Shown piece after piece: positions 7,110 through 63,426 of a stretch of DNA of 64,000 nt. Under the pieces are notes generated by a model that did no database searches, was not told the origin of the DNA, and saw only the letters and a list, made by a program, of their open reading frames with translations. A program made the position numbers and the translations under genes. The stretch is from Ranitomeya imitator (lineage: Eukaryota). The stretch covers positions 469,960,001-470,024,000 of the forward strand of contig NC_091287.1 in the NCBI RefSeq assembly GCF_032444005.1, written 5' to 3'. Positions within the stretch are counted from its first letter, which is position 1. Each line of letters opens with the position of its first letter.

Positions 7110-8540
7110 TTAGGGAGGGACTATAGATTGTAGCACCCTTAACCCAAAGGAAAGATCAGAGGAGGACCCCAAATCCAACCGATAGTGTTTAAAGAAAGTG
7201 GAAGGGGATGACCATGTGGCCGCCTTACATATCTGCTCCACTGACACTCCAGATCTTTCTGCCCAGGATGACGCCATGGCCCGGGTGGAATGTGCCTTTA
7301 GGTTCTGCGGAGCTGGCCCCCCACCTGCTGTATAAGCTAGAGAGATAGTTTCCCTAATCCATTTAGCCAGTAAATATTTCGATACTCTAAATCCTTTCTT
7401 TGGACCTTGGAAGGAAAGAAGCAGTGCCCCATCCTTCTTCCAATTATCAGTAGCTGAAATATACTGAAGAAGAGATCTCCTGACGTCTAACGTATGAAGC
7501 TCCTGCTCTTTAGGATTAGAGGGATTAGGAATAAAGGACGGCAAAACTATCTCCTGTGATCTATGGAACCGTGTCGCCACCTTTGGCAGATATGCTGGGT
7601 CTGGTCTAAGGACTACTCTGTCTGACAAGATTTCAGTGTATGGAGGAGCTCTGGAAAGTGCCTGTATATCCCCTATCCTGCGAGCTGAGGTTATGGCGAT
7701 CAGGAAGGCTGTCTTAAGTGTCAACATTTTGATCGAGGCCTCCTGCAGAGGTTCAAAGGGGGGTTTAGTTAGAGAGGACAGAACTAAATTTAAATCCCAT
7801 GGAACTGTTCTGTCTTTATGCAGTGGTGTAGATCTACTAACTGCCTTCATAAACCTCGCTATCCAGTAGTTATTCGCTATATTACAGGAAAACAGGGCAC
7901 CTAAAGCTGAGACCTGTACCCTAAGGGTACTAGGAGAGAGTTTCAACTCGAACCCCTTCTGTAGGAACTCTAGGATTTGTTGTACTGGCACCCCGTCTTG
8001 GATATTAAACTTTGAACAAGACAAGAACTTTCTCCAAGTCCTAGAGTAGATTTTCGTAGTTACTTGCTTTCTACTCTTTAGGAGCGTCTCCACCAAGTTT
8101 GGAGAGAAGCCTTTTCCCACTAATAGTGACCGTTCAAACACCATGCCGTCAAATGGAGCCCCGTCACTTGTGGATGGGAGATCGGTCCCTGCGAAAGCAA
8201 GTTCGGGATCTCTGGCAGTACCCAGGGGACCGCTACAGACATTGTCTTGAGCCAGGCAAACCAGGTTCTTCTGGGCCAAAAGGGGGCGATAAGGATGACT
8301 TTCGCTCGATCCTCCCTGATTTTCCTCACCACTAGAGGTATCAGGTTCAGTGGTGGGAAAGCATAGGCTAGTGGAAAATCCCATTTCATGAGAAACGCGT
8401 CTACCGCCAGGGGATTCTCCCTGGGATTTAGGGAGCAAAAAAGTTTTACTTTTCTGTTGTTTCTGGTGGCGAATAGATCCACCACTGGTTGACCCCATCT
8501 GCGGACGACAAGATTGAAAATGTCCTCGTTGAGAGACCAC
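7110..8540 (-). CDS. DIRS-B tyrosine recombinase ORF (true start uncertain; overlaps RT ORF)
   Basis: ITSARRIGDI (R), KAHSTRAM (HxxR), ATWSS...TFFKHY (Y) catalytic motifs; no stops. Confidence 0.9.
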   Translation of the reverse strand: MVSQRGHFQSCRPQMGSTSGGSIRHQKQQKSKTFLLPKSQGESPGGRRVSHEMGFSTSLCFPTTEPDTSSGEENQGGSSESHPYRPLLAQKNLVCLAQDNVCSGPLGTARDPELAFAGTDLPSTSDGAPFDGMVFERSLLVGKGFSPNLVETLLKSRKQVTTKIYSRTWRKFLSCSKFNIQDGVPVQQILEFLQKGFELKLSPSTLRVQVSALGALFSCNIANNYWIARFMKAVSRSTPLHKDRTVPWDLNLVLSSLTKPPFEPLQEASIKMLTLKTAFLIAITSARRIGDIQALSRAPPYTEILSDRVVLRPDPAYLPKVATRFHRSQEIVLPSFIPNPSNPKEQELHTLDVRRSLLQYISATDNWKKDGALLLSFQGPKKGFRVSKYLLAKWIRETISLAYTAGGGPAPQNLKAHSTRAMASSWAERSGVSVEQICKAATWSSPSTFFKHYRLDLGSSSDLSFGLRVLQSIVPP

Positions 8541-10000
8541 TCTCCCTGTTTTAACACATTTCGGCTGAGGAAATCTGCTGCCACATTTTCTTTTCCTTTG
8601 ATGTGAAGAGCTGTCAAAGATAGAAAATTGAGCTCTGCCACCTGGAACAACCGATCCGTGATCTGCATTAAAGTTTCGGAACGAGTTCCCCCTTGCCGGT
8701 TTATGTAAGCGACCGCCACTCTGTTGTCCGACAGAATTCTGACGTGCTGGCCCTGCAGATATACGAGGAATTTTTTAACAGCCAGTTCAACCGCCAACAA
8801 CTCTCTTTGATTTGATGAAAATGTTGTGAAGGGTTCCCACTGTCCCTGGACCACCATGTCCCCCATATAGGCTCCCCACCCTGAAGAGCTGGCATCCGTG
8901 GTTATCACGTGGGTGACATCTATCATCCAGGGAACCCCTGCTGATAAATTTTGTTTATCTAGCCACCATCTAAGGGAATTCAATGTTATCGGCCTCAATG
9001 TCAATTTTCCATTCAATGCGCCTCCTAAGGCTCTGTCATGGAACAGGACTTCATTTTGTAGGGACCTGGTGTGGAACTGAGCCCACTTAACTGCTGGGAT
9101 GCAAGATGTGAGTGACCCAAGTAGAGACATTGCTTGCCTAAGTGTCATGGAAGGTGTATTGATTGCTCTTAATACAAAACTCTGAATTTGGTCCATTTTC
9201 TCTATAGGGAGGAGACACTGCTGTGTCACTGAATTCAACATTAACCCCAGGAATTTTTGAACATTTAGGGGCTGTAATTTAGATTTTTCAAAGTTTATGA
9301 TCCAACCCAACCGTTCTAGTTTGGTTTTAGCAATCTCCCATTGTGACAGACAATGATCTACCGAGTTACCTACAATGAGGAAATCGTCTAAGTAGGGGAC
9401 TATAAGGATATTTGACTCTCTTAAATGCGCCATAACTTCCGCAATTATTTTAGTAAACACCCTAGGTGCCGAGGTGATCCCAAAGGGGAGCGCTCTGAAT
9501 TGAAAATGTCGAATCCTACCCCCCATTAGTATCGCTACCCTCAGGTATCGTTGGAAATCAGCATGAATGGGTACATGATAGTAGGCATCTTTCAAATCCA
9601 CTACTACCATGAAACAGTTGTTGAAAAGCATTTTTATTGCCGAATTGATGGACTCCATTTTGAAAGTATGTTTCACCAAAAACTTATTGAGACCCTTAAG
9701 ATTTATAATGGTCCTGTAAGATTTATCAGGCTTCTGGATTAGGAACAGGGGAGAGTAAAACCCTTCCCCTGCCTGAGAATACGGCACTTCTACCAAAACA
9801 TTTTTGGAACAGAGAGTCCTCACTTCCTCTTCTAGGGCGAATTGTTCAGTGGGAGATGAGCGCCAGGGTGTTAACCTAAATTTGTCCTGTGGAATATGAA
9901 CAAATTCCAGCTTGAGACCATGGGAAACAGTGTCTTTTATCCAAACGCTGTTTGTGATTTTCGACCACTCTGCCGAGAAATGCAATAGTCTCCCTCCCAC
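8120..10000 (-). CDS. DIRS-B RT / RNase H / methyltransferase-like ORF
   Basis: DLKDAYY, LPFG, YLDD, TDAS, SDN, DLFA...YAFPP; 626 aa uninterrupted. Confidence 0.93.
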   Translation of the reverse strand: MGGRLLHFSAEWSKITNSVWIKDTVSHGLKLEFVHIPQDKFRLTPWRSSPTEQFALEEEVRTLCSKNVLVEVPYSQAGEGFYSPLFLIQKPDKSYRTIINLKGLNKFLVKHTFKMESINSAIKMLFNNCFMVVVDLKDAYYHVPIHADFQRYLRVAILMGGRIRHFQFRALPFGITSAPRVFTKIIAEVMAHLRESNILIVPYLDDFLIVGNSVDHCLSQWEIAKTKLERLGWIINFEKSKLQPLNVQKFLGLMLNSVTQQCLLPIEKMDQIQSFVLRAINTPSMTLRQAMSLLGSLTSCIPAVKWAQFHTRSLQNEVLFHDRALGGALNGKLTLRPITLNSLRWWLDKQNLSAGVPWMIDVTHVITTDASSSGWGAYMGDMVVQGQWEPFTTFSSNQRELLAVELAVKKFLVYLQGQHVRILSDNRVAVAYINRQGGTRSETLMQITDRLFQVAELNFLSLTALHIKGKENVAADFLSRNVLKQGEWSLNEDIFNLVVRRWGQPVVDLFATRNNRKVKLFCSLNPRENPLAVDAFLMKWDFPLAYAFPPLNLIPLVVRKIREDRAKVILIAPFWPRRTWFAWLKTMSVAVPWVLPEIPNLLSQGPISHPQVTGLHLTAWCLNGHY

Positions 10001-19359: not shown

Positions 19360-19735
19360 TTAATGTCTTCAGGACATGCTCCCTAATCTCCTGAAGTAAT
19401 AGAGCAGCCAAACCCCTATATCAGTACAGAGAGAGAGACCAAACACCCTGAATGATCCCAGATCAATGTCTACAAAGATAGACCATACACATTAAAAATG
19501 TAAATAATGAACCCCAGACCAAACTACTAATCAAAAACATCCACCCAAAATTACAGACCAGACACGCTAAATTATAAGGGACAGTGGCAGCGCTCATCGA
19601 GCTCCATCTGCCCCATAGACAATGAGTAGATCCGTCATACACAGGCTTCACTCCTTGGTTGTCGGGTGATAACAAGTTACCGCCTATACTGTGGACAGAA
19701 TATAACAGCAGTGTGCAGCGCGCCTCACCAGGGCT

Positions 19736-21444
19736 CCGTTCATTCACTATATGGCTGCTGAGCGCTGCACTCTGCCCCCAGAGAAGTAATGGAGCGGTAG
19801 TCAGGTATGTGACCTGTCGCTCCATTCACTCACTATATGGCTGCCGAGCGCTGCACTCTGCCCCCAGAGAAGTAATGGAGCGGTAGTCAGGTATCTGACC
19901 TGTCGCTCCATTCACTCACTATATGGCTGCCGAGCGCTGCACTCTGCCCCCAGAGAAGTAATGGAGCGGTAGTCAGGTATGTGACCTGTCGCTCCATTCA
20001 CTCACTATATGGCTGCCGAGCGCTGCACTCTGCCCCCAGAGAAGTAATGGAGCGGTAGTCAGGTATGTGACCTGTCGCTCCATTCACTCACTATATGGCT
20101 GCCGAGCGCTGCACTCTGCCCCCAGAGAAGTAATGGAGCGGTAGTCAGGTATCTGACCTGTCGCTCCATTCACTCACTATATGGCTGCCGAGCGCTGCAC
20201 TCTGCCCCCAGAGAAGTAATGGAGCGGTAGTCAGGTATGTGACCTGTCGCTCCATTCACTCACTATATGGCTGCCGAGCGCTGCACTCTGCCCCCAGAGA
20301 AGTAATGGAGCGGTAGTCAGGTATCTGACCTGTCGCTCCATTCACTCACTATATGGCTGCTGAGCGCTGCACTCTGCCCCCAGAGAAGTAATGGAGCGGT
20401 AGTCAGGTATCTGACCTGTCGCTCCATTCACTCACTATATGGCTGCCGAGCGCTGCACTCTGCCCCCAGAGAAGTAATGGAGCGGTAGTTGGTATCTGAC
20501 CTGTCGCTCCATTCACTCACTATATGGCTGCCGAGCGCTGCACCCTGCCCTCTGAATAGTAATGGAGCGGTAGTCATTCACTTTATGGCTGCCGAGCGCT
20601 GCGCTCTGCCCCCGAGAAGTAATGGAGCAGTAGTTGGCATCTGACCTGTCGCTCCATTCATTCACTATATGGCTGCCGAGCGCTGCACTCTGCCCGGAGA
20701 AGTAATGGAGCGGTAGTTGGCATCTGACCTGTCACTCCATTCATTCACTATATGGATGCCGAGCGCTGCACTCTGCCCCTGAGAAGTATTGGAGCGGTAG
20801 TTGGCATCTGACCTGTTGCTCCATTCATTCACTATATGGCTGCTGAGTGCTGCACTCTGCCCGGAGAAGTAATGGAGCGGTAGTCGGGAATCTGACCTGT
20901 CGCTCCATTCATTCACTATATGGCTGCCAAGCGCTGCACTCTGCCCCCTGAGAAGTAATGGAGCGGTAGTCGGGAATCTGACCTGTCGCTCCATTCATTC
21001 ACTATATGGCTGCTGAGCGCTGCACTCTGCCCTCTGAGAAGTAATGGAGCAGTAGTTGGCATCTGACCTGTCACTCCATTCATTCACTATATGGCTGCCA
21101 AGCGCTGCACTCTGCCCCCTGAGAAGTAATGGAGCGGTAGTCGGGAATCTGACCTGTCGCTCCATTCATTCACTATATGGCTGCTGAGCGCTGCACTCTG
21201 CCCTCTGAGAAGTAATGGAGCGGTAGTTGGCATCTGACCTGTCACTCCATTCATTCACTATATGGCTGCTGAGCGCTGCACCCTGCCCTCTGAGAAGTAA
21301 TGGAGCAGTAGTTGGCATCTGACCTGTCAGTCCATTCATTCACTATATGGCTGCTGAGCGCTGCACCCTGCCCTCTGAGAAGTAATGGAGCGGTAGTTGG
21401 CATCTGACCTGTCGCTCCATTCATTCACTATATGGCTGCTGAGC
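19736..21444. repeat. 86-bp satellite, ~20 copies (resumes at 45737-45927 and 46114-46170)
   Basis: Unit CATTCACTCACTATATGGCTGCCGAGCGCTGCACTCTGCCCCCAGAGAAGTAATGGAGCGG...; starts 19823 and 19909 give period 86. Confidence 0.93.
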
Positions 21445-22735: not shown

Positions 22736-23595
22736 ATGGATAATTATCCCCTTAAATAAACGGAACTAGTAGGACATACATCTGAAAATACCCATATCAA
22801 ATGATCACAATGGTGTGAAGGAAAAGGATAGCTCGCACTGAGGTACAATGGCACTGTGATGGATAACAATGTGATATCCTAAACTATTGGCATACCCTCA
22901 AGAGACCCCTATATATACCAAAGGTGAAATAGCAAAAGTACATACTTGCAAAAATGTAGAGAGCCGGATAGGGAAAACCCACTGTGGGAATAAGTATATA
23001 TAAAACGCTTTAAGATAAAGGAATGAACCATTATAATATATGTGCAGCGTAAAGAGAGTGTAGTAGAATTACCTTAGTGTATGGTGACTGCCATAGAAGT
23101 GCTGCTTCGACCGCGAGGAAAACCGCTGACGGGAGGCAGTGAGAAGTGACTGTGCGGCCGACATTTTATGCTGTACCGGTGCTCGTGCCCGTGAAAGAAC
23201 TTCCAGGTGAAGGTGCAAGTGCCGGACCTGCGCAAAGAGGTCCGGAGAGAGACAGGGAAAGTTGAGGGAGGCCGAAATAGTGCGCTTGCGCAGAAGAGCC
23301 CGAGCCCGGGCTTCACACAGCTCCTCAGTGCTGCAAGATAATAGAAAGAAAGAACCATGAATTAAAGACACGGGTTAACAATATATCAGACTAAATATGT
23401 AAAGTTATTTCTAAGTATATAGTACAAGGAGAACATATATAAACATAATAAAACAACCAAGAGGGCTCAAATACTTATGAATGCCCGCTGGATACATAAA
23501 GAGAAGGTTAATGTAGAATGACACAATGTCATGGCACATAATAATAAGAGATTGAAAATCGGACATCTGACATGATGAAACCAGGGATTCAAGCT

Positions 23596-25611
23596 AAACC
23601 AGGGATTCAAGCTTCAGGAGGCTAATTTGCATATTCCAGGTGCCTTCTGGGAGAAGCGAAGTCTCCCTAAGCTAGAAGATCGTTGGGTACAGCCGGGACC
23701 AGCTGCTTCGAAAGCATCACCAAACCAGGGATTCAAGCTTCAGGAGGCTAATTTGCATATTCCAGGTGCCTTCTGGGAGAAGCGAAGTCTCCCTAAGCTA
23801 GAAGATCGTTGGGTACAGCCGGGACCAGCTGCTTCGAAAGCATCACCAAACCAGGGATTCAAGCTTCAGGAGGCTAATTTGCATATTCCAGGTGCCTTCT
23901 GGGAGAAGCGAAGTCTCCCTAAGCTAGAAGATCGTTGGGTACAGCCGGGACCAGCTGCTTCGAAAGCATCACCAAACCAGGGATTCAAGCTTCAGGAGGC
24001 TAATTTGCATATTCCAGGTGCCTTCTGGGAGAAGCGAAGTCTCCCTAAGCTAGAAGATCGTTGGGTACAGCCGGGACCAGCTGCTTCGAAAGCATCACCA
24101 AACCAGGGATTCAAGCTTCAGGAGGCTAATTTGCATATTCCAGGTGCCTTCTGGGAGAAGCGAAGTCTCCCTAAGCTAGAAGATCGTTGGGTACAGCCGG
24201 GACCAGCTGCTTCGAAAGCATCACCAAACCAGGGATTCAAGCTTCAGGAGGCTAATTTGCATATTCCAGGTGCCTTCTGGGAGAAGCGAAGTCTCCCTAA
24301 GCTAGAAGATCGTTGGGTACAGCCGGGACCAGCTGCTTCGAAAGCATCACCAAACCAGGGATTCAAGCTTCAGGAGGCTAATTTGCATATTCCAGGTGCC
24401 TTCTGGGAGAAGCGAAGTCTCCCTAAGCTAGAAGATCGTTGGGTACAGCCGGGACCAGCTGCTTCGAAAGCATCACCAAACCAGGGATTCAAGCTTCAGG
24501 AGGCTAATTTGCATATTCCAGGTGCCTTCTGGGAGAAGCGAAGTCTCCCTAAGCTAGAAGATCGTTGGATACAGCCGGGACCAGCTGCTTCGAAAGCATC
24601 ACCAAACCAGGGATTCAAGCTTCAGGAGGCTAATTTGCATATTCCAGGTGCCTTCTGGGAGAAGCGAAGTCTCCCTAAGCTAGAAGATCGTTGGGTACAG
24701 CCGGGACCAGCTGCTTCGAAAGCATCACCAAACCAGGGATTCAAGCTTCAGGAGGCTAATTTGCATATTCCAGGTGCCTTCTGGGAGAAGCGAAGTCTCC
24801 CTAAGCTAGAAGATCGTTGGGTACAGCCGGGACCAGCTGCTTCGAAAGCATCACCAAACCAGGGATTCAAGCTTCAGGAGGCTAATTTGCATATTCCAGG
24901 TGCCTTCTGGGAGAAGCGAAGTCTCCCTAAGCTAGAAGATCGTTGGATACAGCCGGGACCAGCTGCTTCGAAAGCATCACCAAACCAGGGATTCAAGCTT
25001 CAGGAGGCTAATTTGCATATTCCAGGTGCCTTCTGGGAGAAGCGAAGTCTCCCTAAGCTAGAAGATCGTTGGGTACAGCCGGGACCAGCTGCTTCGAAAG
25101 CATCACCAAACCAGGGATTCAAGCTTCAGGAGGCTAATTTGCATATTCCAGGTGCCTTCTGGGAGAAGCGAAGTCTCCCTAAGCTAGAAGATCGTTGGGT
25201 ACAGCCGGGACCAGCTGCTTCGAAAGCATCACCAAACCAGGGATTCAAGCTTCAGGAGGCTAATTTGCATATTCCAGGTGCCTTCTGGGAGAAGCGAAGT
25301 CTCCCTAAGCTAGAAGATCGTTGGATACAGCCGGGACCAGCTGCTTCGAAAGCATCACCAAACCAGGGATTCAAGCTTCAGGAGGCTAATTTGCATATTC
25401 CAGGTGCCTTCTGGGAGAAGCGAAGTCTCCCTAAGCTAGAAGATCGTTGGGTACAGCCGGGACCAGCTGCTTCGAAAGCATCACCAAACCAGGGATTCAA
25501 GCTTCAGGAGGCTAATTTGCATATTCCAGGTGCCTTCTGGGAGAAGCGAAGTCTCCCTAAGCTAGAAGATCGTTGGGTACAGCCGGGACCAGCTGCTTCG
25601 AAAGCATCACC
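23596..25611 (+). promoter_or_regulatory. 16 x 126-bp tandem monomers at the CR1 5' end, each with octamer, SPH/ZNF143-like and PSE-like motifs
   Basis: Period 126 (23596, 23722 ... 25612); ATTTGCAT at unit 30-37; CTCCCAGAAGGCAC on the minus strand at ~45-58; TCTCCCTAAGCTAGAAG at 67-83. The repeat itself is certain; promoter function is inferred. Confidence 0.7.
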
Positions 25612-25731
25612 AAACCGCGCGCCTTACGGCGCGCGAATTTTTGCCTGTAGGACATTATTGCAAGAGAGCTTGGCTGAGTAGATTACACAAGAAGGAAAAC
25701 ACACAGCAAGTCAGCAGGATCTAGGAGCAAC

Positions 25732-26685
25732 ATGGCAGATGTGACAACCTACATGGTGAGCTGCAGCATGTGCTACATGTTCACAGATCGACCAGAAGAA
25801 GAATCCAATTTCACCTGTCAGAAGTGTAGACTAGTGGCCCTTTTAGAAGAAAAGGTGCGGGGTCTGGAAGAAAGAATAGCAACTTTGAAACTCATCAAAG
25901 AGAATGAAGACTTTCTAGACAGAACAGAAGCATCTCTACTGGTCACAGAAGGTGAAAAAAGTGTCAGAGAACCTCCAAAAGCAGATGAGTGGAAGCATGT
26001 GACCAAAAGAAGCAAGAAGACCATGGAGAAATCACCAACCACACAACTGAAGAACCGATATCAAATCTTTGTAGAGGATGAAGATGGCACACCTAAGAAT
26101 GAAGCAATACCAGCAAGCAAAAAAGAAAAGGGCACACAGCAACAAGTGACAGCAAAAAGTACAGCCAAGAAGCAACGAAGAGTGGTGGTGGTGGGAGACT
26201 CACTACTGAGAGGCACAGAAGCAGCCATCTGCAGACCGGACATAACTGCAAGAGAAGTATGCTGCCTTCCAGGTGCGATGATCAAGGATGTGACCGATAG
26301 GATACCAAAGCTCTTCAGCTCCAAGGACGTCCACCCATTTCTTCTGATACATGTTGGCACCAATGACACGGCAAGGAAGGACCTACCGACAATCTGCAAG
26401 GACTTTGAAGAGTTGGGGAAGAAAGTAAAGGAACTGGATGCACAGGTAGTTTTTTCTTCTATCCTTCCAGTAGACGGGCATGGTACCAGGAGATGGAACA
26501 GGATCCTTGATGCAAACAACTGGCTAAGACGATGGTGCAGACAACAAGGATTCGGATTCCTGGACCACGGTGTGAATTACTGGTATGATGGACTCCTCGC
26601 CAGAGACGGACTACACCTCAACAAACCTGGGAAACACACATTCGCCAGAAGACTCGCTACACTCATCAGGAGGGCGTTAAACTAG
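25732..26685 (+). CDS. CR1 ORF1: Cys-rich motif, coiled coil, SGNH/GDSL esterase
   Basis: CSMC..CQKC, LEEKVRGLEERIATL, GDSLLRG, HVGTND, DGLHLN. Confidence 0.9.
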   Translation: MADVTTYMVSCSMCYMFTDRPEEESNFTCQKCRLVALLEEKVRGLEERIATLKLIKENEDFLDRTEASLLVTEGEKSVREPPKADEWKHVTKRSKKTMEKSPTTQLKNRYQIFVEDEDGTPKNEAIPASKKEKGTQQQVTAKSTAKKQRRVVVVGDSLLRGTEAAICRPDITAREVCCLPGAMIKDVTDRIPKLFSSKDVHPFLLIHVGTNDTARKDLPTICKDFEELGKKVKELDAQVVFSSILPVDGHGTRRWNRILDANNWLRRWCRQQGFGFLDHGVNYWYDGLLARDGLHLNKPGKHTFARRLATLIRRALN

Positions 26686-26822
26686 AAGAAGAGGGGACGG
26701 GAAGAAAAACATTAGACTCGAACAAAGACGACCCAGGAAAACATACTCTGAAGGGAGGTAAGAACATTTCTAAAACAATCCACAGTGAGGAGATTGGAAC
26801 AAAACAAAATCCTCTAAACTGC

Positions 26823-29603
26823 ATGCTCGCAAACGCCAGAAGCCTGACAAACAAGATGGAAGAACTAGAAGCAGAAATATCTACAGGTAACTTTGACATA
26901 GTGGGAATAACCGAGACATGGTTAGATGAAAGCTATGACTGGGCAGTCAACTTACAGGGTTACAGTCTGTTTAGAAAGGATCGTAAAAATCGGAGAGGAG
27001 GAGGGGTTTGTCTCTATGTAAAGTCTTGTCTAAAGTCCACTTTAAGGGAGGATATTAGCGAAGGGAATGAGGATGTCGAGTCCATATGGGTTGAAATTCA
27101 TGGAGGGAAAAATGGTAACAAAATTCTCATTGGGGTCTGTTACAAACCCCCAAATATAACAGAAAGCATGGAAAGTCTACTTCTAAAGCAGATAGATGAA
27201 GCTGCAACCCATAATGAGGTCCTGGTTATGGGGGACTTTAACTACCCGGATATTAACTGGGAAACAGAAACCTGTGAAACCCATAAAGGCAACAGGTTTC
27301 TGCTAATAACCAAGAAAAATTATCTTTCACAATTGGTGCAGAATCCAACCAGAGGAGCAGCACTTTTAGACCTAATACTATCTAATAGACCTGACAGAAT
27401 AACAAATCTGCAGGTGGTCGGGCATTTAGGAAATAGCGACCACAATATTGTGCAGTTTCACCTGTCTTTCACTAGGGGGACTTGTCAGGGAGTCACAAAA
27501 ACATTGAACTTTAGGAAGGCAAAGTTTGAACAGCTTAGAGATGCCCTTAATCTGGTAGACTGGGACAATATCCTCAGAAATAAGAATACAGATAATAAAT
27601 GGGAAATGTTTAAGAACATCCTAAATAGGCAGTGTAAGCGGTTTATACCTTGTGGGAATAAAAGGACTAGAAATAGGAAAAACCCAATGTGGCTAAACAA
27701 AGAAGTAAGACAGGCAATTAACAGTAAAAAGAAAGCATTTGCACTACTAAAGCAGGATGGCACCATTGAAGCTCTAAAAAACTATAGGGAGAAAAATACT
27801 TTATCTAAAAAACTAATTAAAGCTGCCAAAAAGGAAACAGAGAAGCACATTGCTAAGGAGAGTAAAACTAATCCCAAACTGTTCTTCAACTATATCAATA
27901 GTAAAAGAATAAAAACTGAAAATGTAGGCCCCTTAAAAAATAGTGAGGAAAGAATGGTTGTAGATGACGAGGAAAAAGCTAACATATTAAACACCTTCTT
28001 CTCCACGGTATTCACGGTGGAAAATGAAATGCTAGGTGAAATCCCAAGAAACAATGAAAACCCTATATTAAGGGTCACCAATCTAACCCAAGAAGAGGTG
28101 CGAAACCGGCTAAATAAGATTAAAATAGATAAATCTCCGGGGCCGGATGGCATACACCCACGATAACTAAGAGAACTAAGTAATGTAATAGATAAACCAT
28201 TATTTCTTATTTTTAGTGACTCTATAGCGACAGGGTCTGTTCCGCAGGATTGGCGCATAGCAAATGTGGTGCCAATATTCAAAAAGGGCTCTAAAAGTGA
28301 ACCTGGAAATTATAGGCCAGTAAGTCTAACCTCTATTGTTGGTAAAATATTTGAAGGGTTTCTGAGGGATGTTATTCTGGATTATCTCAATGAGAATAAC
28401 TGTTTAACTCCATATCAGCATGGGTTTATGAGAAATCGCTCCTGTCAAACCAATCTAATTAGTTTTTATGAAGAGGTAAGCTATAGGCTGGACCACGGTG
28501 AGTCATTGGACGTGGTATATCTCGATTTTTCCAAAGCGTTTGATACCGTGCCGCACAAGAGGTTGGCACACAAAATGAGAATGCTTGGTCTGGGGGAACA
28601 TGTGTGTAAATGGGTTAGTAACTGGCTTAGTGATAGAAAGCAGAGGGTGGTTATAAATGGTATAGTCTCTAACTGGGTCGCTGTGACCAGTGGGGTACCG
28701 CAGGGGTCAGTATTGGGACCTGTTCTCTTCAACATATTCATTAATGATCTGGTAAAAGGTTTACACAGTAAAATATCGATATTTGCAGATGATACAAAAC
28801 TATGTAAAGCAGTTAATACAAGAGAAGATAGTATTCTGCTACAGATGGATCTGGATAAGTTGGAAACTTGGGCTGAAAGGTGGCAGATGAGGTTTAACAA
28901 TGATAAATGTAAGGTTATACACATGGGAAGAGGGAATCAATATCACCATTACACACTGAACGGGAAACCACTGGGTAAATCTGACAGGGAGAAGGACTTG
29001 GGGATCCTAGTTAATGATAAACTTACCTGGAGCAGCCAGTGCCAGGCAGCAGCTGCCAAGGCAAACAGGATCATGGGGTGCATTAAAAGAGGTCTGGATA
29101 CACATGATGAGAGCATTATACTGCCTCTGTACAAATCCCTAGTTAGACCGCACATGGAGTACTGTGTCCAGTTTTGGGCACCGGTGCTCAGGAAGGATAT
29201 AATGGAACTAGAGAGAGTACAAAGGAGGGCAACAAAATTAATAAAGGGGATGGGAGAACTACAATACCCAGATAGATTAGCGAAATTAGGATTATTTAGT
29301 CTAGAAAAAAGACGACTGAGGGGCGATCTAATAACCATGTATAAGTATATAAGGGGACAATACAAATATCTCGCTGAGGATCTGTTTATACCAAGGAAGG
29401 TGACGGGCACAAGGGGGCATTCTTTGCGTCTGGAGGAGAGAAGGTTTTTCCACCAACATAGAAGAGGATTCTTTACTGTTAGGGCAGTGAGAATCTGGAA
29501 TTGCTTGCCTGAGGAGGTGGTGATGGCGAACTCAGTCGAGGGGTTCAAGAGAGGCCTGGATGTCTTCCTGGAGCAGAACAATATTGTATCATACAATTAT
29601 TAG
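26823..29603 (+). pseudogene. CR1 ORF2 (APE endonuclease + RT) with one in-frame stop at 28164-28166
   Basis: GITETW, GDFNYP, SDHN; QHGF, YLDFSKAFD, GVPQGSVLGP, FADD; the two track ORFs share a frame. Confidence 0.92.
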
Positions 29604-29762
29604 GTTCTGTAGAAGGACGTAGATCTGGGTATTTATTATGATGGAATATAGGCTGAACTGGATGGACAAATGTCTTTTTTCGGCCTTACTAACTATGTTA
29701 CTATGTTACTATGTTACTCGTAATTGATCCAGATTTGAACAAGACCATAATATAAACCATGA

Positions 29763-30240
29763 TTAACAATAGACCTCATATTCCCTGTTTAAACCATGCG
29801 GGGCCAAAGTTTGCAATGTATAAATCCAAAAGGACTCCCGCTCCTTCAGTCTCTTAATTCTGTCTCCTCCCCTCCTCAAAACCCGTACGTGGTCTATTAC
29901 TTGGAACCTCAATTGGGCCACATTATGATTGTTTTGTAGAAAATGAGCCGGAATAGGTAGAAGGGTCCTGCCACATCTAATGGTGGATTTGTGTTTAGAA
30001 ATGCGGTCTCGGATATGTTGGGTAGTCTCTCCAACATATCCGAGACCGCAAGGACACTTTATCAAATATACCACGAAGGATGAGTTACCGTTGAACTGTC
30101 CCTTGATGGGAAATCTCTTTCCCGACTGTGGGTGTGTGAAGGAGTCACCCTTAAGTACATTAGAGCACTGTTGACAATTCAAACATGGAAATGTGCCATT
30201 GCGAGGAGAAGTCAAGACTCCCTGTGTGAGGCCCCTCTTA
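29763..30240 (-). CDS. Penelope GIY-YIG endonuclease domain (C-terminal part of RT-EN ORF)
   Basis: CLNCQQC, VVYLIKCPCGLGYVGET, RISKH, ERESFWI, GLN; in frame with RT once the MITE and one TAA are removed (GLSKRGLTQGVLTSPRNG). Confidence 0.9.
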
Positions 30241-30953
30241 AGGTACCGTCACACTAAGCGACGCTGCAGCGATACCGACAACGATCCGGATCGCTGCAGC
30301 GTCGCTGTTTGGTCGCTGGAGAGCTGTCACACAGACAGCTCTCCAGCGACCAACGATCCCGAGGTCCCCGGTAACCAGGGTAAACATCGGGTTACTAAGC
30401 GCAGGGCCGCGCTTAGTAACCCGATGTTTACCCTGGTTACCATCCTAAAAGTAAAAAAACAAACGCTTCATACTTACCTACCGCTGTCTGTCCTCGGCGC
30501 TCTGCTTCTCTGGTCTGGCTGTGAGCGCCGGGCAGCCGGAAAGCAGAGCGATGATGTCACCGCTCTGCTTTCCGGCCGCTGTGCTCACAGCCAGACCAGA
30601 GAAGCAGAGCGCCGAGGACAGACAGCGGTAGGTAAGTATGTAGCGGTTGTTATTTTTACTTTAACGATGGTAACCAGGGTAAACATCGGGTTACTAAGCG
30701 CGGCCCTGCGCTTAGTAACCCGATGTTTACCCTGGTTACCAGCAAAGACATCGCTGAATCGGTGTCACACACGCCGATTCAGCGATGTCTACGGGGAGTC
30801 CAGCGACGAAACAAAGTTCTGGACTTTCTTCCCCGACCAGCGACAGCACAGCAGGGGCCTGATCGCTGCTGCCTGTCACACTGGACGATATTACTAGCGA
30901 GGACGCTGCAACGTCACGGATCGCTAGCGATATCGTCTAGTGTGACGGTACCT
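30241..30953. mobile_element. Harbinger-like MITE interrupting the Penelope RT-EN ORF
   Basis: TIRs AGGTACCGTCACACT / AGTGTGACGGTACCT; TTA TSD at 30238-30240 and 30954-30956. Confidence 0.9.
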
Positions 30954-32848
30954 TTACTCAGGCCTACATCAGCCCTGATTAAATGATCTTTAATATTAGA
31001 GCAATGTTTACTACAAATTATAGGTTTGGAAACAAATTCCTTGACCTGCGGGTATACTTTCTTTAAAATATCCCAGTGTTGAAGGATACATTTGTTAATG
31101 AGATGGTTCAAAGGATGAAATGTGCTAACAAAAGCCATCCTAGGGGTCTTAGAGCATATGTCAGGTCTGGTTGCGTCTCTGTGAAATCTAAGAACATGTT
31201 CCGGGTACCCCCTATTACGAAATTTCTCATTCATTTCTTGATGTCGGATACGACTAATCTCGGAATTGGACACAATCCTATCAATCCTGACATGTTGGGA
31301 TTTCGGAAGAGCTCTTTTTATATGATGTGGATGACAGCTGTCATATTTCAAGAGACTGTTCCTATCTGTGGGCTTCACAAACAGATCCGTCTCAACCTCT
31401 CTATGTTCATTAATAATGACTCTAGTGTCCAAAAAACTCATGGAAACTGGATCGTGAGATAAAGAAAAAGTAAGGCCCGGTAAACTAGAGTTGAGGTCTA
31501 TATGAAAGTTACAAAGGGTTTGTATATCGCCAGTCCATATGATGAAAATGTCGTCTATATACCGACGCCAGTAGATCACGGAAGACGTAAAACTGGGATG
31601 TGTATAGACATATGTAATTTCGAAATTATCCATAAAAATATTTGCATATGGGGGTGCCATGTTGGACCCCATGGCAGTCCCCTTCCTCTGTATAAAAAAC
31701 TGGTCATCAAAAATGAAAAAATTACGAGTCATTACTAGCGTGAGTAGATCCTTACAAAATTTTTGTTGTTGAATGGAGAAGTTTGTATGAGAGGCTAAGA
31801 AGGACATAACTGACCTAATGCCATCCTCGTGTCTTATGCTTGTATATAGGCTATTGACATCCATAGAAACTAACAGACAGTCAGTTGGAAGTCTTCCTAC
31901 GTTTTTAAGAGATGTTAAAAAGTCGGTTGTGTCCTTGAGGTAGGACCTGATCTTTGGTACCAGGGGGGATAGAATTTTGTCTAACGTGATGGCTAGAGGA
32001 GATAACAAGGATTCCGTGGATGCGACTATGGGACGCCCTGGGGGCCTCACAGGGTGTTTATGAATTTTGGGGAGTGTGTAGAACACTGATATAACAGGAT
32101 GTTGCTTTATTAAAAATTCTCCCAATTTCGTATCAATAATGCCCGTTGTAGTGTAATAAGTCACCAGATCTCTAATTTCTCTACTGATCTCAAAAGTGGG
32201 GTTACTGCCAATGGCTTGATACGTCTCCTTGTCTCCAAGTTGTGTCCTAATCTCTTGCATATAGTAGTCCCGGTCTAATACTACAATTGAACCCCCCTTG
32301 TCCGCCGGTTTTATTATAATTTGTTTATTATCTCTTAATGTTAACAAAGCCCTCTTCTCCTCAACAGAAAGATTATGTCTCACATGGTGATTACCCTTCT
32401 CAATGGATTCTAAAACTTTTTTGACGTCATTCTTTACCAACTCTATATATGTTTCAACCGGATGGTAGATATGAGGGGGTTGAAAAGAACTGTGAGTTCG
32501 CAAATCTAAAGATTTTAAAGTGAATCCCAAACCAATAGTCTCAGATACAGGAGGAATATCTGTTAATGTTTTAGAAAAATGCGCTTTCAATCTTATGTTC
32601 CTGAAAAAACGGTACAATTCTTGATCCAACTGGAACGAGTTGAATTGTGGGACCGGACAGAAGCTAAGTCCTTTTTGCAAGACAGTCAGTTCTGCGGGGG
32701 ATAAACATTGTGACGAGATGTTGTATACGATGTTGTTGGGAATGTCCGTACCTGGGATCTGGTCGCCATCCGGCGTTGTTCTGATCCGTGTCCGTCGCCC
32801 CCTCCTCGGTTTCCTTTGTGGCCTTGGCCCGGACGTTGTTCTAAAAAA
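30954..32848 (-). CDS. Penelope reverse transcriptase
   Basis: KGLSFCP, PADKGG, LPKIHK..PPGRPIV, MDVNSLYT, GTAMGS, RYIDD, FLD; no stops. Confidence 0.92.
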
Positions 32849-33289
32849 GAAGAGCGTGCTGAACCAAAGTCGCTTTCTGAACTGGTGGAGAATGGACTGT
32901 AGTCTCTTCTCGTTGGTCTCCGATTTCTGGAGTAGGTGGTGGACTGCCATTTATATACTTGGTTATTTCTATAGTCCTCGGTGTCGCGCAAAAATTTATT
33001 ACGCTTCCTGATCTGCAAACTATCGCGTAAATCAGAGACTGTCTTGTCCACTTTGTCCTTCAACCCTTTGAAGTCCTCTGGTGAAGATGTACTCCTAAGC
33101 TGTTGCTCCGTAGATGAGATCCTGCTTTTCAATTCCACAATCTCCTTCTGTAAAAAATCAATGGTTAATATCATTAAGTCCATAGAACATTTGTTGAGAA
33201 TTGACTCAAATTTACCACAATACTCAATGTTATCTTGAAACAGTGTAGGTCTCAATGGAACCCTGAGGCCTCTGGGTATGCGCTGGACC
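32686..33289 (-). CDS. Penelope ORF1, C-terminal part
   Basis: VQRIPRGLRV..., coiled coil, KRNKFLRD; continues the 44500-44681 piece across the hAT insertion. Confidence 0.8.
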
Positions 33290-33949: not shown

Positions 33950-36050
33950 TGAAAGGGGCTGTGTGGAGAAGGGGGGAGGATGAGGCTGTGTGGAGAAGGA
34001 GAGATGATGAGGGGGCTGTGTGGAGGAGGGATGAGGGGGCTGTGTGGAGGAGGGATGAGGGGGCTGTGTGGAGGAGGGATGATGAGGAGGCTGTGCGGAG
34101 GAGGGATGATGAGGAGGCTGTGTGGAGAAGGAGAGATGATGAGGGGGCTGTGTGGAGGAGGGATGAGGGGGCTGTGTGGAGGAAGGATGATGAGGGGGCT
34201 GTGTGGAGAAGAAGAGATGATGAGGGGGCTGTGTGGAGAAGGGGGGAGGATGAGGCTGTGTGGAGAAGGAGAGATGATGAGGGGGCTGTGTGGAGGAGAG
34301 ATGAGGGGGCTGTGTGGAGAAGGAGAGATGATGAGGGGGCTGTGTGGAGGAGGGATGATGAGGGGGCTGTGTGGAGGAGGGATGATGAGGAGGCTGTGTG
34401 GAGAAGAGATGATGAGGCTGTGTGGAGAAGATGAGATGATGAGGGGGCTGTGTGGAGAAGGAGAGATGAGGGGGCTGTGTGGAGAAGGGATGATGAGGGG
34501 GCTGTGTGGAGAAGGAGAGATGAGGAGGCTGTGTGGAGAAGGAGAGATGATGAGGGGGCTGTGTGGAGAAGGAGGGATGATGAGTAGGCTGTGTGGAGAA
34601 GGAGAGATGATGAGGGGGCTGTGTGGAGAAGAGATGATGAGGGGGCTGTGTGGAGAAGAAGAGATGATGAGGGGGCTGTGTGGAGAAGGGGGGAGGATGA
34701 GGCTGTGTGGAGAAGGAGGGATGATGAGGGGGCTGTGTGGAGAAGGAGAGATGATGAGGGGGCTGTGTGGAGGAGGGATGATGAGGGGGCTGTGTGGAGG
34801 AGGGATGATGAGGAGGCTGTGTGGAGAAGAGATGATGAGGAGGCTGTGTGGAGAAGATGAGATGATGAGGGGGCTGTGTGGAGAAGGAGAGATGAGGGGG
34901 CTGTGTGGAGAAGGGATGATGAGGGGGCTGTGTGGAGAAGGAGAGATGAGGAGGCTGTGTGGAGAAGGAGAGATGATGAGGAGGCTGTGTGGAGAAGGAG
35001 GGATGATGAGGAGGCTGTGTGGAGAAGGAGAGATGATGAGGGGGCTGTGTGGAGAAGAGATGATGAGGGGGCTGTGTGGAGAAGAAGAGATGATGAGGGG
35101 GCTGTGTGGAGAAGAGATGATGAGGAGGCTGTGTGGAGAAGGAGAGATGATGAGGGGGCTGTGTGGAGGAGAGATGAGGGGGCTGTGTGGAGAAGGAGAG
35201 ATGATGAGGGGGCTGTGTGGAGGAGGGATGATGAGGGGGCTGTGTGGAGGAGGGATGATGAGGAGGCTGTGTGGAGAAGAGATGATGAGGAGGCTGTGTG
35301 GAGAAGATGAGATGATGAGGGGGCTGTGTGGAGAAGGAGAGATGAGGGGGCTGTGTGGAGAAGAAGGGATGATGAGGGGCTGTGTGGAGAAGGAGGGATG
35401 ATGAGGGGGCTGTGTGGAGAAGAAGGGATGATGAGGGGCTGTGTGGAAAAGGAGGGATGATGAGGGGGCTGTGTGGAGAAGAAGAGATGATGAGGGGGCT
35501 GTGTGGAGAAGAAGGGATGATGAGGGGGCTGTGTGGAGAAGGAGGGATGATGAGGGGGCTGTGTGGAGAAGAAGGGATGATGAGGGGCTGTGTGGAGAAG
35601 GAGGGATGATGAGGGGGCTGTGTGGAGAAGAAGGGATGATGAGGGGCTGTGTGGAGAAGGAGGGATGATGAGGGGGCTGTGTGGAGAAGAAGGGATGATG
35701 AGGGGCTGTGTGGAAAAGGAGGGATGATGAGGGGGCTGTGTGGAGAAGGAGAGATGATGAGGGGGCTGTGTGGAGAAGAAGGGATGATGAGGGGCTGTGT
35801 GGAAAAGGAGGGACGATGAGGGGGCTGTGTGGAGAAGGAGAAATGATGAGGGGGCTGTGTGGAGAAGAAGGGATGATGAGGGGCTGTGTGGAAAAGGAGG
35901 GATGATGAGCTTTGTGGAAAAGGGGGGGGTGATGAGGGGGCTGTGTGGAGAAGGGGGGATGATGAGGAGGCTGTGTGGAAAAGGGGGGATGATGAGCTTT
36001 GTGGAAAAAGAGGTGATCCAGGGCTGTGTGGAGAAGAGGGGGGGAGTGAG
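33950..36050. repeat. Purine-rich variable-unit minisatellite (~25-30 bp)
   Basis: Repeats of GGGGCTGTGTGGAGAAGGAGAGATGATGA; boundaries approximate. Confidence 0.92.
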
Positions 36051-46716: not shown

Positions 46717-47645
46717 AGGTACCCGTCACACATAACGATATCGTTAACGATATCGTTGCTTTTTGTGACGTAGCAAGGATATCGTTAAGGAAATCGTTAT
46801 GTGTGACAGCGACCAACGATCAGGCCCCTGCTGGGAGATCGTTGGTCGCTGGGGAAAGTCCAGCACTTTATTCCGTCGCTGGACTTCCCGCTGACATCGC
46901 TGGATCGGCATGTGTGACGCCGATCCAGCGATGTCTTCACTGGTAACCAGGGTAAACATCGGGTTACTAAGCGCAGGGCCGTGCTTAGTAACCCGATGTT
47001 TACCCTGGTTACCAGCGTAAACGTTAAAAAAACAAACACTACATACTTACCTTCAGCTGTCTGTCCCCGGCGCTCTGCTTCTCTGCGCTCCTCCTGCATC
47101 CTGTGTCAGCGCCGGCCAGCCAGAAAGCAGAGCACCGGAGGACATACAGCTGAAGGTAAGTATGTAGTGTTTGTTTTTTTAACGTTTACGCTGGTAACCA
47201 GGGTAAACATCGGGTTACTTAGCGTGGCCCTGCGCTTAGTAACCCGATGTTTACCCTGGTTACCGGGGACCTCGGGATAGTTGGTCGTTGGAGAGCTGTC
47301 TGACAGCTCTCCAGCGACGCTGCAGCCATCGACATCGTTGTCGGTATCGCTGCAGCGTCGCTGAGTGTGAAGGTACCTTTAAGGCCCTGCGCTTAGTAAC
47401 CCGATGTTTACCCTGGTTATCAGTGAAGACATCGCTGGATCGGCGTCACACACGCCGATCCAGCGATGTCAGCGGGAGATCCAGCGACGAAATAAAGTTC
47501 TGGACTTTCCCCAGCGACCAACGATCTCCCAGCAGGGGCCTGATCGTTGGTTGCTGTCACACATAACGATTTCCTTAATGATATCCTTGCTACATCACAA
47601 AAAGCAACGATATCGTTAACGATATCGTTATGTGTGACGGTACCT
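46717..47645. mobile_element. Harbinger-like MITE composite (same family as 30241-30953)
   Basis: AGGTACC(C)GTCACAC ends, TAA flanks, internal extra terminus near 47370. Confidence 0.8.
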
Positions 47646-50627: not shown

Positions 50628-52835
50628 AAGTGAGACACATATATGTATATATATTCTTACTTCATACAGCCGCGATATAGCAAAAAGCCGGTAATTCAAT
50701 TACCGGCTTTTTCTTTCTCCTTCCTAAAACCCGACATGATTTGAGACATGGTTTACATACAGTAAACCATGTCTTCTCTCCATTTTTTTTGCAGATTCCA
50801 CACTACTAATGTCAGTAGTGTGTATCTGCAAAATTTGGCCGTTCTAGCTCTTAAAATAAAGGGTTAAATGGCGGAAAAAATTGGCGTGGGCTCCCGCGCA
50901 ATTTTCTCCGCCAGAGTAGTAAAGCCAGTGACTGAGGGCAGATATTAATAGCCTGGAGAGGGTCCATGGTTATTGGCCCCCCCCCTGGCTACAAATATCT
51001 GCCCCCAGCCACCCCAGAAAAGGCACATCTGGAAGATGCGCCTATTCTGGCACTTGGCCACTCTCTTCCCATTCCCGTGTAGCGGTGGGATATGGGGTAA
51101 TGAAGGGTTAATGCCACCTTGCTATTGTAAGGTGACATTAAGCCTAATTAATAATGGAGAGGCGTCAATTATGACACCTATCCATTATTAATCCAATTGT
51201 AGTAAAGGGTTAAATAAAACACAAACACATTATTTAAAATTATTTTAATGAAATAAAAACAATGGTTGTTGGAGTATTTTATTCTACGCCCAATCCAGTC
51301 ACTGAAGACCCTCGTTCTGTGAAAGAAAAAACATAATAAACCAACAATATCCATACCTTCCGCAGATCTGTAACATCCAACGGTGTAAATCCTTCTGAAG
51401 GGGTTAAAACATTTTGCAGCAAGGAGCTTTGCTAATGCAATGCTACTCCTCGCTGCAAAACCCCGGGGAATGAGTCTATATATAGATCAATGAGCTATAT
51501 TTAGCTTCATTTGCGGTGAGGCGCCCTCTGCTGGATGTTCATAGATCGTGGGAACTTTCCTAGAAAGCCTGGGAGCTTTCTAGGAAAGTTCCCACGATCT
51601 ATGAACATCCAGCAGAGGGCGCCTCACCGCAAATGAAGCTAAATATAGCTCATTGATCTACATTTAGACTCATTCCCCGGGGTTTTGCAGCAAGGAGCAG
51701 CCTGCATTAGCAAAGCTCCTTGCTGCAAAATGTTTTAACCCCTTCAGAAGGATTTACATCGTTGGACGTTACAGATCTGCGGAGGGTAAGTATATTGTTG
51801 GTTTATTATGTTTTTTCTTTCACAGAACGAGGGTCTTCAGTGACTGGATTGGGCGTAGAATAAAATACTCCAACAACCATTGTTTTTATTTCATTAAAAT
51901 AATTTTAAATAATGTGTTTGTGTTTTATTTAACCCTTTACTACAATTGGATTAATAATGGATAGGTGTCATAATTGACGCCTCTCCATTATTAATTAGGC
52001 TTAATGTCACCTTACAATAGCAAGGTGGCATTAACCCTTCATTACCCCATATCCCACCGCTACACGGGAATGGGAAGAGAGTGGCCAAGTGCCAGAATAG
52101 GCGCATCTTCCAGATGTGCCTTTTCTGGGGTGGCTGGGGGCAGATATTTGTAGCCAGGGGGGGGCCAATAACCATGGACCCTCTCCAGGCTATTAATATC
52201 TGCCCTCAGTCACTGGCTTTACTACTCTGGCGGAGAAAATTGCGCGGGAGCCCACGCCAATTTTTTCCGCCATTTAACGCTTTATTTTAAGAGCTAGAAC
52301 GGCCAAATTTTGGAGATACACTCTACTGACATTAGTAGTGTGGAATCTGCAAAAAAAATGGAGAGAAGACATGGTTTACTGTATGTAAACCATGTCTCAA
52401 ATCATGTCGGGTTTTAGGAAGGAGAAAGAAAAAGCCGGTAATTGAATTACCGGCTTTCAAGCTGTATAGCGCTGGAAAAAATATTAATATATATANNNNN
52501 NNNNNNNNNNNNNNNNNNNNNNNNNNNNNNNNNNNNNNNNNNNNNNNNNNNNNNNNNNNNNNNNNNNNNNNNNNNNNNNNNNNNNNNNNNNNNNNNNNNN
52601 NNNNNNNNNNNNNNNNNNNNNNNNNNNNNNATAGCGGTATGTTGGTTTTGCAAGCCTGCGAGAAAACCACGCAGTACGGATGCCATACGGATTACATACG
52701 GAGGATGCCATGCGCAAAAAACGCTGACACACCCTGCCTACGGAGGAGCTACGGACCACTATTTTCGGGACATTTCAGCGTATTACGGCCGTAATATACG
52801 GACCGTATTTTCATACGCTGAGTGTGAAGCCGGCC
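50216..52835. mobile_element. Harbinger-like foldback element with ~1.8-kb internal palindrome
   Basis: TIRs GGCCGGCTTCACACT, TAA TSD; arms ~50680-51568 and 51575-~52460. Confidence 0.85.
52496..52630. other. Assembly gap
   Basis: N run next to a (TA)n tract. Confidence 1.
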
Positions 52836-63248: not shown

Positions 63249-63426
63249 NNNNNNNNNNNNNNNNNNNNNNNNNNNNNNNNNNNNNNNNNNNNNNNNNNNN
63301 NNNNNNNNNNNNNNNNNNNNNNNNNNNNNNNNNNNNNNNNNNNNNNNNNNNNNNNNNNNNNNNNNNNNNNNNNNNNNNNNNNNNNNNNNNNNNNNNNNNN
63401 NNNNNNNNNNNNNNNNNNNNNNNNNN
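63249..63426. other. Assembly gap
   Basis: N run. Confidence 1.

Follow-up and report, generated by a model that had tools for sequence, protein, structure and literature searches.

A long interspersed nuclear element (LINE) must carry its promoter within its own transcript, and how the vertebrate LINEs outside L1, such as CR1, carry theirs is, to our knowledge, poorly known. Here we describe a 64-kb stretch of the Ranitomeya imitator genome (contig NC_091287.1, positions 469,960,001–470,024,000, forward strand; hereafter the window, with positions counted from its first base), in which an apparent CR1-type LINE begins with 16 tandem units of 126 bp. Each unit holds an octamer, a Staf/ZNF143-like site and a box resembling the proximal sequence element (PSE) of small nuclear RNA (snRNA) genes, and the units are probably tandem promoter monomers. 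In the "promoting in tandem" of Drosophila HeT-A, the downstream unit is driven by a promoter that lies within the 3′ end of the complete telomeric element preceding it. The arrangement proposed here would be alike in that one head-to-tail unit drives the next, which solves the inheritance of an upstream-type promoter, whereas here short promoter units would be iterated within the 5′ end of a single element.

In mouse and rat L1, the 5′ end consists of promoter units (A, Tf and Gf monomers of ~200 bp; ~650 bp in rat), a tether and open reading frame 1 (ORF1), and the number of units varies between copies (PMC5381506). The present array shares with these elements a tandem series of putative promoter units heading an autonomous kind of LINE and the short unique tether to ORF1. 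However, its LINE is assigned to the CR1 clade, ORF1 encoding an esterase and the tail being a microsatellite; the 126-bp unit is shorter and has no sequence similarity to the L1 monomers; the sites are of the octamer, Staf and PSE-like kinds rather than YY1-type; and the array starts exactly at a unit boundary. If its units are indeed promoters, the CR1 clade would have reached the solution of mouse L1, i.e., tandem promoter units, independently and for a second time.

The vertebrate snRNA promoters of RNA polymerase II (Pol II), i.e., those of U1, U2, U4 and U5, combine a distal sequence element (DSE) with Oct-1 and Staf sites and a PSE, have no TATA box, and are accompanied by a 3′ box (PMC5493778). 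The 126-bp unit resembles them in having the octamer next to the Staf/SPH site, a PSE-like box ~55–60 nt upstream of the inferred start, and no TATA box. In contrast to these promoters, the candidate enhancer of the CR1 unit stands at both −97/−86 and −223/−212, the PSE match is imperfect (10/12), and a 3′ box is missing; the RNA made would be 6 kb long and protein-coding, and the promoter would be tandemly iterated and partly transcribed.

Two further systems link snRNA-type promoters to repeats. Newt satellite 2 is a 330-bp tandem repeat with an internal snRNA-type promoter (Coats et al. 1994, as cited in PMC2220036). By this secondary account, it is likewise an amphibian tandem repeat whose units are reported to have a snRNA-type Pol II promoter; however, the satellite is non-coding and retrozyme-like, giving unit-length RNAs with a hammerhead ribozyme, whereas the present units belong to an autonomous kind of LINE, and an Rfam scan of the window found neither a ribozyme nor a snRNA gene. 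In trypanosomatids, Pr77 of L1Tc, the promoter at the 5′ terminus of this LINE, binds TBP and SNAP50, which belong to the machinery of snRNA and SL-RNA genes (PMC8190864). In contrast to the array, Pr77 is a single 77-nt internal promoter of a protist, which is not tandem, has no Oct or Staf sites, and is evolutionarily unrelated. A full-text literature search for monomer or PSE-type promoters in non-LTR elements, CR1 included, found none described for CR1, its coverage being incomplete, so that the result is absence of evidence only.

The tandem array and its CR1 family

Tandem Repeats Finder places the array at 23596–25616, with a period of 126 bp, 16.0 copies and 99% matches (Table 1). A BLAST search of the window with unit 1 gave 100% identity for 13 of the 16 units and 99.2% for the remaining three (units 8, 11 and 14), each of which has G>A at unit position 92. 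The "16 exact 126-bp monomers" of an earlier note on this DNA are thus right in number and length and slightly overstated in identity. The variant units, at 24478–24603, 24856–24981 and 25234–25359, are every third unit, giving a higher-order period of 378 bp, which suggests recent local duplication of three-unit blocks inside the array. Neither a further copy of the unit nor a second copy of the unique leader that follows the array was found anywhere in the window, and metagenome contigs scanned for exact matches to the monomer contained none.

The array meets the leader in a clean 5-nt overlap, AAACC. The first base of the element (23578) is unit position 1, which bears out the claim of the earlier note that the 5′ end lies exactly on a monomer boundary; this agreement in phase with the array-to-leader junction has a chance of ~5%, and the odd 18-bp partial unit likewise begins at the unit boundary phase. 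The 2,154 nt from 23578 to the ATG of ORF1 contain no ATG at all, as expected if transcription and scanning pass through a varying number of units before ORF1. An open frame of 684 codons also runs through the array (126 bp being 42 codons); it was rejected as coding, as it has no ATG and its length is unremarkable for one of six frames.

The downstream element is assigned to the CR1-type LINEs by its domain content, its type of tail and the taxa of its ORF1 homologues. ORF2 contains the Exo_endo_phos (1.3e-16) and RVT_1 (8.1e-35) domains of Pfam in a single frame, and the 8-bp microsatellite tail is typical of CR1. The 3′ untranslated region (UTR; 29604–29721) has neither a poly(A) tail nor AATAAA. 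The best protein matches of ORF1 are R. imitator sequences with 92–98% identity, followed by Dendrobates tinctorius with 64%; beyond the dendrobatids, homologues occur in turtles, lizards, crocodilians and birds. The 16 units being near-identical, ORF1 intact and ORF2 broken by one stop only, this copy must have been inserted very recently, although it is itself probably non-autonomous.

Contigs assembled from public runs (Logan) were mapped to the last units, the leader and ORF1; such contigs necessarily break at the repeat. Single contigs that connect the last monomer, across the leader, with ORF1 were found at multi-copy depth in runs X6 (organism B; 1,459 nt, depth 86), X11 (organism C; 2,485 nt, depth 173) and X16 (organism E). 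Two runs flagged "RNA?" cover the same stretch, X3 with an 813-nt junction contig and X17 with shorter overlapping contigs, and run X1, from the probable source organism, contributes >8,000–10,000 matching contigs at very high summed depth. The monomer assembles as a 156-nt cycle contig (126 + 30), and another contig starts 30 nt before the branch. In X6 and X11, the ratio of monomer depth to leader depth is 4.6–7, so that an average copy should hold several units. The junction contigs at multi-copy depth in several organisms show that the array belongs to the CR1 family; on this contig evidence, it is, as the earlier note had supposed, the 5′ end of CR1 itself and not a neighbouring satellite. 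By the same evidence, the family is abundant and the monomer–leader junction is common to related organisms. We take the element to be a dendrobatid CR1-type LINE that is young and present in many copies, and its family is large enough to bear on the very large genome of the poison frog.

Sequence signals of the unit

The Staf-like site beside the octamer matches 15 of 18 positions of the published consensus YYWCCCRNMATSCMYYRCR (PMC5493778), and its GCACC resembles a tested probe, TTCCCATTATGCACCGCG (PMC3627581). The common unit variant G58A turns the site into TTCCCAGAAGGCAC. Against a tighter 18-mer consensus, the match is 14 of 17 defined positions. Chance levels were obtained from dinucleotide-preserving shuffles of the unit, taken as circular. 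A perfect octamer was present in 0.32% of the shuffles, and a Staf match in 0.3% with the tighter 18-mer (at least 14/17) or 3.2% with the looser published 19-mer (at least 15/18), while the two sites jointly appeared in 0 of 20,000. The octamer and Staf/SPH pair is a real signal, far beyond chance. An octamer beside a Staf/SPH site is a mark of vertebrate snRNA-type distal elements (PMC2235858; PMC3627581; PMC5493778). Counted from the next unit boundary, the pair of each unit stands at −97/−86 and that of the preceding unit at −223/−212.

The PSE-like box, TCTCCCTAAGCTAGAAG(A), agrees with the published PSE consensus TCACCNTNASNNNAAWRN (PMC5493778) at 10 of 12 positions and with the vertebrate consensus given in the earlier note at 11 of 14, neither consensus being the frog's own. 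A box of this kind occurs anywhere in 2–5.5% of the shuffles and, when it is confined to the plus strand and to a start 54–67 nt before the boundary, in 0.18–0.28% (p = 0.002–0.003); the other 62 kb of the window, on both strands, holds 24 PSE-like matches of at least 10/12, which is the same background rate. At this 0.3% level, or perhaps 1% allowing for the choice of consensus and of window, the placed box is suggestive. It keeps the CC at −62/−61, the T at −59 and the G at −49, which are read by SNAP190 and SNAP50 in the structure of SNAPc, the snRNA-activating protein complex (PMC9652321). The octamer, Staf-like and PSE-like motifs lie at the unit positions given by the earlier note, which had also reported the 11/14 match and put +1 at the next unit boundary.

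No TATA-like sequence is found at −35 to −20 or elsewhere in the unit, in agreement with the earlier note. Across the boundary, CCA+1AACC is an exact match to the initiator consensus YYANWYY, of which a second match lies at unit positions 27–33. Transcription would start at the first A of AAACC, on which several indirect observations converge, i.e., the 5′ end in the same phase, the exact initiator, the PSE-like box 60 nt upstream, the ATG-free leader, a hairpin just after the boundary, and the layout of a relative (L004). A type-3 promoter of RNA polymerase III (Pol III) was considered and rejected, as there is no TATA box and a T5 run (25638–25642), which would stop Pol III, directly follows the array.

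The hairpin is an all-GC stem at the start of the leader and is identical at 21 of 22 nt in another relative, L005 (positions 31–50), whose ORF1 is 53% identical and the rest of whose leader is unalignable. In X1, its loop is variable (25624 T>G, 25627 C>A), and ~64% of the depth has A in place of the closing G at 25635. It looks like a conserved 5′-terminal RNA or DNA element of this CR1 lineage. Among the X1 contigs over 25360–25680, >25 single-contig joints link many monomer phases to 25621 or 25635/25636, points that lie at or just past the hairpin.

In L004, a CR1 relative with 46% identity in ORF1, the region 380–500 contains the 12-mer GCTAATTTGCAT, i.e., unit positions 26–37, followed by a CCGCCC GC box and by the TATA sequence TATAAAAG ~25 nt before a GC-rich element. 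This spacing would place the start of L004 just upstream of its GC-rich element, as is proposed for the array. The TATAAAAG of L004 also lies upstream of a GGCGCGAGCC direct repeat that holds a canonical E2F-like TTTGGCGC. None of the 5′ regions of the relatives L001–L005 has the octamer, the Staf site and the PSE together, and the leaders of L001 and L002 are unrelated.

Common variants of the unit genome-wide lie at positions 20, 27, 58, 74, 78, 114, 120 and 124. They spare the octamer and touch the Staf site only at a Y position (C/T), and those within the PSE-like box (74 and 78, both minor) affect only two N positions of the consensus.

Readings of the array

We consider it probable that the array is a set of tandem promoter monomers at the CR1 5′ end, arranged as in mouse and rat L1; from the anatomy, the family membership and the non-random motifs, we infer promoter activity, a start site and a factor that reads the core. 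Each 126-bp unit would then be a TATA-less Pol II module, which consists of an enhancer (Oct-1 octamer and Staf/ZNF143 site), the PSE-like box and a boundary-spanning initiator. Transcription would start at unit boundaries, any upstream unit serving as the promoter for the next, and the units left in the RNA would form its ATG-free leader, ahead of the conserved GC hairpin, ORF1 and ORF2. Daughter copies would inherit an array that is shortened yet self-sufficient, and arrays might regrow by local duplication, as the three-unit spacing of the variant units suggests.

Several observations weigh against this proposal. The 5′ end at 23578 is known from one copy only, and no recognisable target-site duplication confirms it; the flanks of this copy have no second copy in the window, nor is an empty site recognisable there. 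The initiator consensus is loose, with 6.5% of the shuffles carrying a match at the boundary, and the overall sparing of the motifs by the eight common variants is not significant (~p = 0.1, hypergeometric estimate). The "RNA?" labels are guesses, and the depth ratio of X3 (4.7) matches that of the DNA run X6 (4.6), so that DNA carry-over is possible. A minor unit variant seen in few contigs, AGTCTCCCTCAGCAAGAAGA joined to AAACTGGATT, seems to be without unit positions 85–126; a unit start apparently right after the PSE-like box would break the 60-nt geometry in that subfamily.

Within the promoter array, the core may be read in more than one way. It is quite possible, at somewhat less than an even chance, that the promoter is strictly snRNA-type, i.e., a SNAPc-dependent Pol II promoter with an Oct and SPH DSE, a PSE and no TATA box. 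Each unit would then drive the following one from outside, the distance from the PSE fixing the start. The adjacent octamer and Staf site and the PSE-like box on the right strand at −60 to −43, with its SNAPc-read bases kept and its variants at N positions, argue for it, as do the lack of a TATA box, the amphibian precedent reported for newt satellite 2 and the trypanosome LINE promoter that binds SNAP50 and TBP. Since the CR1 RNA would have no poly(A) signal, non-polyadenylating transcription should be no obstacle.

However, the box has G at −52 and T for A at −63. The former is one of the two positions at which it deviates from the published consensus, and of the three at which it deviates from that of the earlier note. 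Position −52 is sensed by W350 of SNAP50, and a change of AA to GG at −52/−51 "dramatically debilitated" SNAPc binding (PMC9652321). In addition, the box is ~5 bp nearer the start than in human U6-1 (−65/−48) and chicken 7SK (−67/−46), both of which are Pol III genes. No 3′ box (GTTYN0-3AARRYAGA) was found near the 3′ end of the element or in the 600 bp beyond, the search giving two one-mismatch matches only, both in ORF2 (27180 and 28118). The conventional initiator CCA+1AACC could set the start without SNAPc. The octamer of L004 stands in an mRNA-type layout with a GC box and a TATA box, so that, within this CR1 clade, an octamer is not by itself a sign of a snRNA-type promoter. The earlier note placed a distal octamer at about −223, in the preceding monomer; the arithmetic holds, but this is a chosen reading, as the same unit offers an octamer at −97 too. 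Finally, the downstream product is a 6-kb element with two ORFs rather than a short non-coding RNA, and no precedent was found for a snRNA-type promoter on a 6-kb translated RNA.

The proposal of the earlier note, an array of snRNA-type promoters, therefore stands in part. The array is that of CR1, the octamer and Staf pair is beyond chance, the PSE-like box is placed as predicted, and the boundary is the first base of the element; against it stand the G at −52, the missing 3′ box, the conventional initiator at the boundary and the want of a precedent for the long translated RNA. A fuller version, in which an autonomous vertebrate LINE took over a complete snRNA-gene promoter, multiplied it in 126-bp steps and uses every unit as an external SNAPc-dependent Pol II promoter for the next, spare copies travelling with the RNA, we regard as possible but doubtful. 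SNAPc dependence, if shown, would make the array considerably more novel. It would tie retrotransposon expression to the snRNA machinery and its germline and early-embryo activity, the CR1 element gaining the very high activity of snRNA genes in oocytes and early embryos. It would also be the first known snRNA-type promoter driving a long, translated, non-polyadenylated retrotransposon RNA, and a natural test of whether snRNA-type initiation yields long translatable RNA.

The other way to read the core, which is possible but doubtful, is a conventional TATA-less promoter of the mRNA type, with TFIID on CCA+1AACC, Oct-1 and ZNF143 as ordinary activators, and a PSE-like box that is fortuitous or bound by another factor. 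Here the exact initiator, with A+1 at the first base of the element, is directly accounted for, the long translated RNA is the usual product of such promoters, and the relative L004 has a layout of the mRNA type. ZNF143 sites drive thousands of protein-coding promoters, and a proximal Staf site has a precedent in RPPH1, at −87 (PMC3627581). Nevertheless, the placed PSE-like box would then be a coincidence of 0.2–0.3%, and the initiator, given its frequency in shuffles and its second match within the unit, is weak evidence alone.

It is unlikely that the array is a passive minisatellite expansion in the 5′ UTR, with idle motifs and with the promoter elsewhere, in the leader with its hairpin or in ORF1. 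Tandem repeats of a 5′ UTR can grow neutrally, and it is the GC hairpin, not the monomer, that is conserved in L005. However, an octamer, a Staf site and a correctly placed PSE-like box are very unlikely to come together by chance, several units per copy are kept in at least four organisms, and the 5′ end falls on the unit phase. An unrelated satellite abutting this CR1 copy, or an assembly artefact, is highly improbable and largely refuted: one copy only is readable in full and short contigs cannot check the unit number of 16, but the identical monomer–leader–ORF1 junction, which several organisms show in independent runs and at multi-copy depth, and the clean AAACC overlap speak against both, and the adjacent-satellite version is effectively excluded.

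Feature coordinates and neighbouring repeats

Table 1. Positions of the array, its sequence signals and the CR1 element in the window
Feature	Position	Strand	Remarks
Partial unit, 18 bp, AAACCAGGGATTCAAGCT	23578–23595	+	Unit positions 1–18; element 5′ end; same phase as the full units
16 tandem 126-bp monomers	23596–25611	+	No plus-strand ATG; 13 identical, 3 with G>A at position 92
Octamer ATTTGCAT, unit 30–37	25515–25522 (last monomer)	+	Perfect; recurs every 126 bp back to 23625
Staf/ZNF143 (SPH)-like site TCTCCCAGAAGGCACCTGG, unit 41–59	25526–25544	−	3 bp from the octamer
PSE-like box TCTCCCTAAGCTAGAAGA, unit 67–84	25552–25569 (last monomer)	+	−60 to −43 from the next unit boundary
Initiator-like CCA(+1)AACC across the unit boundary	25610–25616	+	A+1 is unit position 1, the same base as the first nucleotide of the element (23578)
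Unique leader ("tether"), array to ORF1, 120 nt	25612–25731	+	No ATG
8-bp all-GC hairpin CGCGCGCC-TTAC-GGCGCGCG	25616–25635	+	Start of the unique leader
ORF1, 317 aa, intact, GDSL/SGNH esterase domain	25732–26685	+	Lipase_GDSL_2, 3.5e-09 (Pfam, above cutoff)
ORF2, apurinic/apyrimidinic (APE) endonuclease and reverse transcriptase	26589–29603	+	Frame open from 26589, first ATG 26823; one in-frame stop, 28164–28166
3′ UTR ending in (ACTATGTT)3.4, 8-bp microsatellite tail	29604–29721	+	Microsatellite 29692–29718

A Penelope-like element lies on the minus strand at 29763–32950, within ~40 bp of the CR1 3′ end, with a reverse transcriptase ORF of 678 aa (30914–32950) and a GIY-YIG ORF of 150 aa (29763–30215). 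A part of its upstream region (30240–30421), which overlaps the start of the GIY-YIG ORF, recurs at 47213–47379 with 86% identity.

Upstream of the CR1 element, two adjoining arrays occupy 19733–21444, with units of 86 bp and 85 bp (9.8 and 10.3 copies, 92–97% matches), each unit having the inverted repeat ATGGAGCGGTAG...CTGTCGCTCCAT. Runs of N, which are assembly gaps or masked sequence, lie at 52496–52630 and 63249–63426. A 2-kb G-rich minisatellite at 33955–35996 (30/57-bp period, ~72 copies, GGGGCTGTGTGGAGAAGGAGAGATGATGAG) gives its 2-kb bin a GC skew of +0.87.

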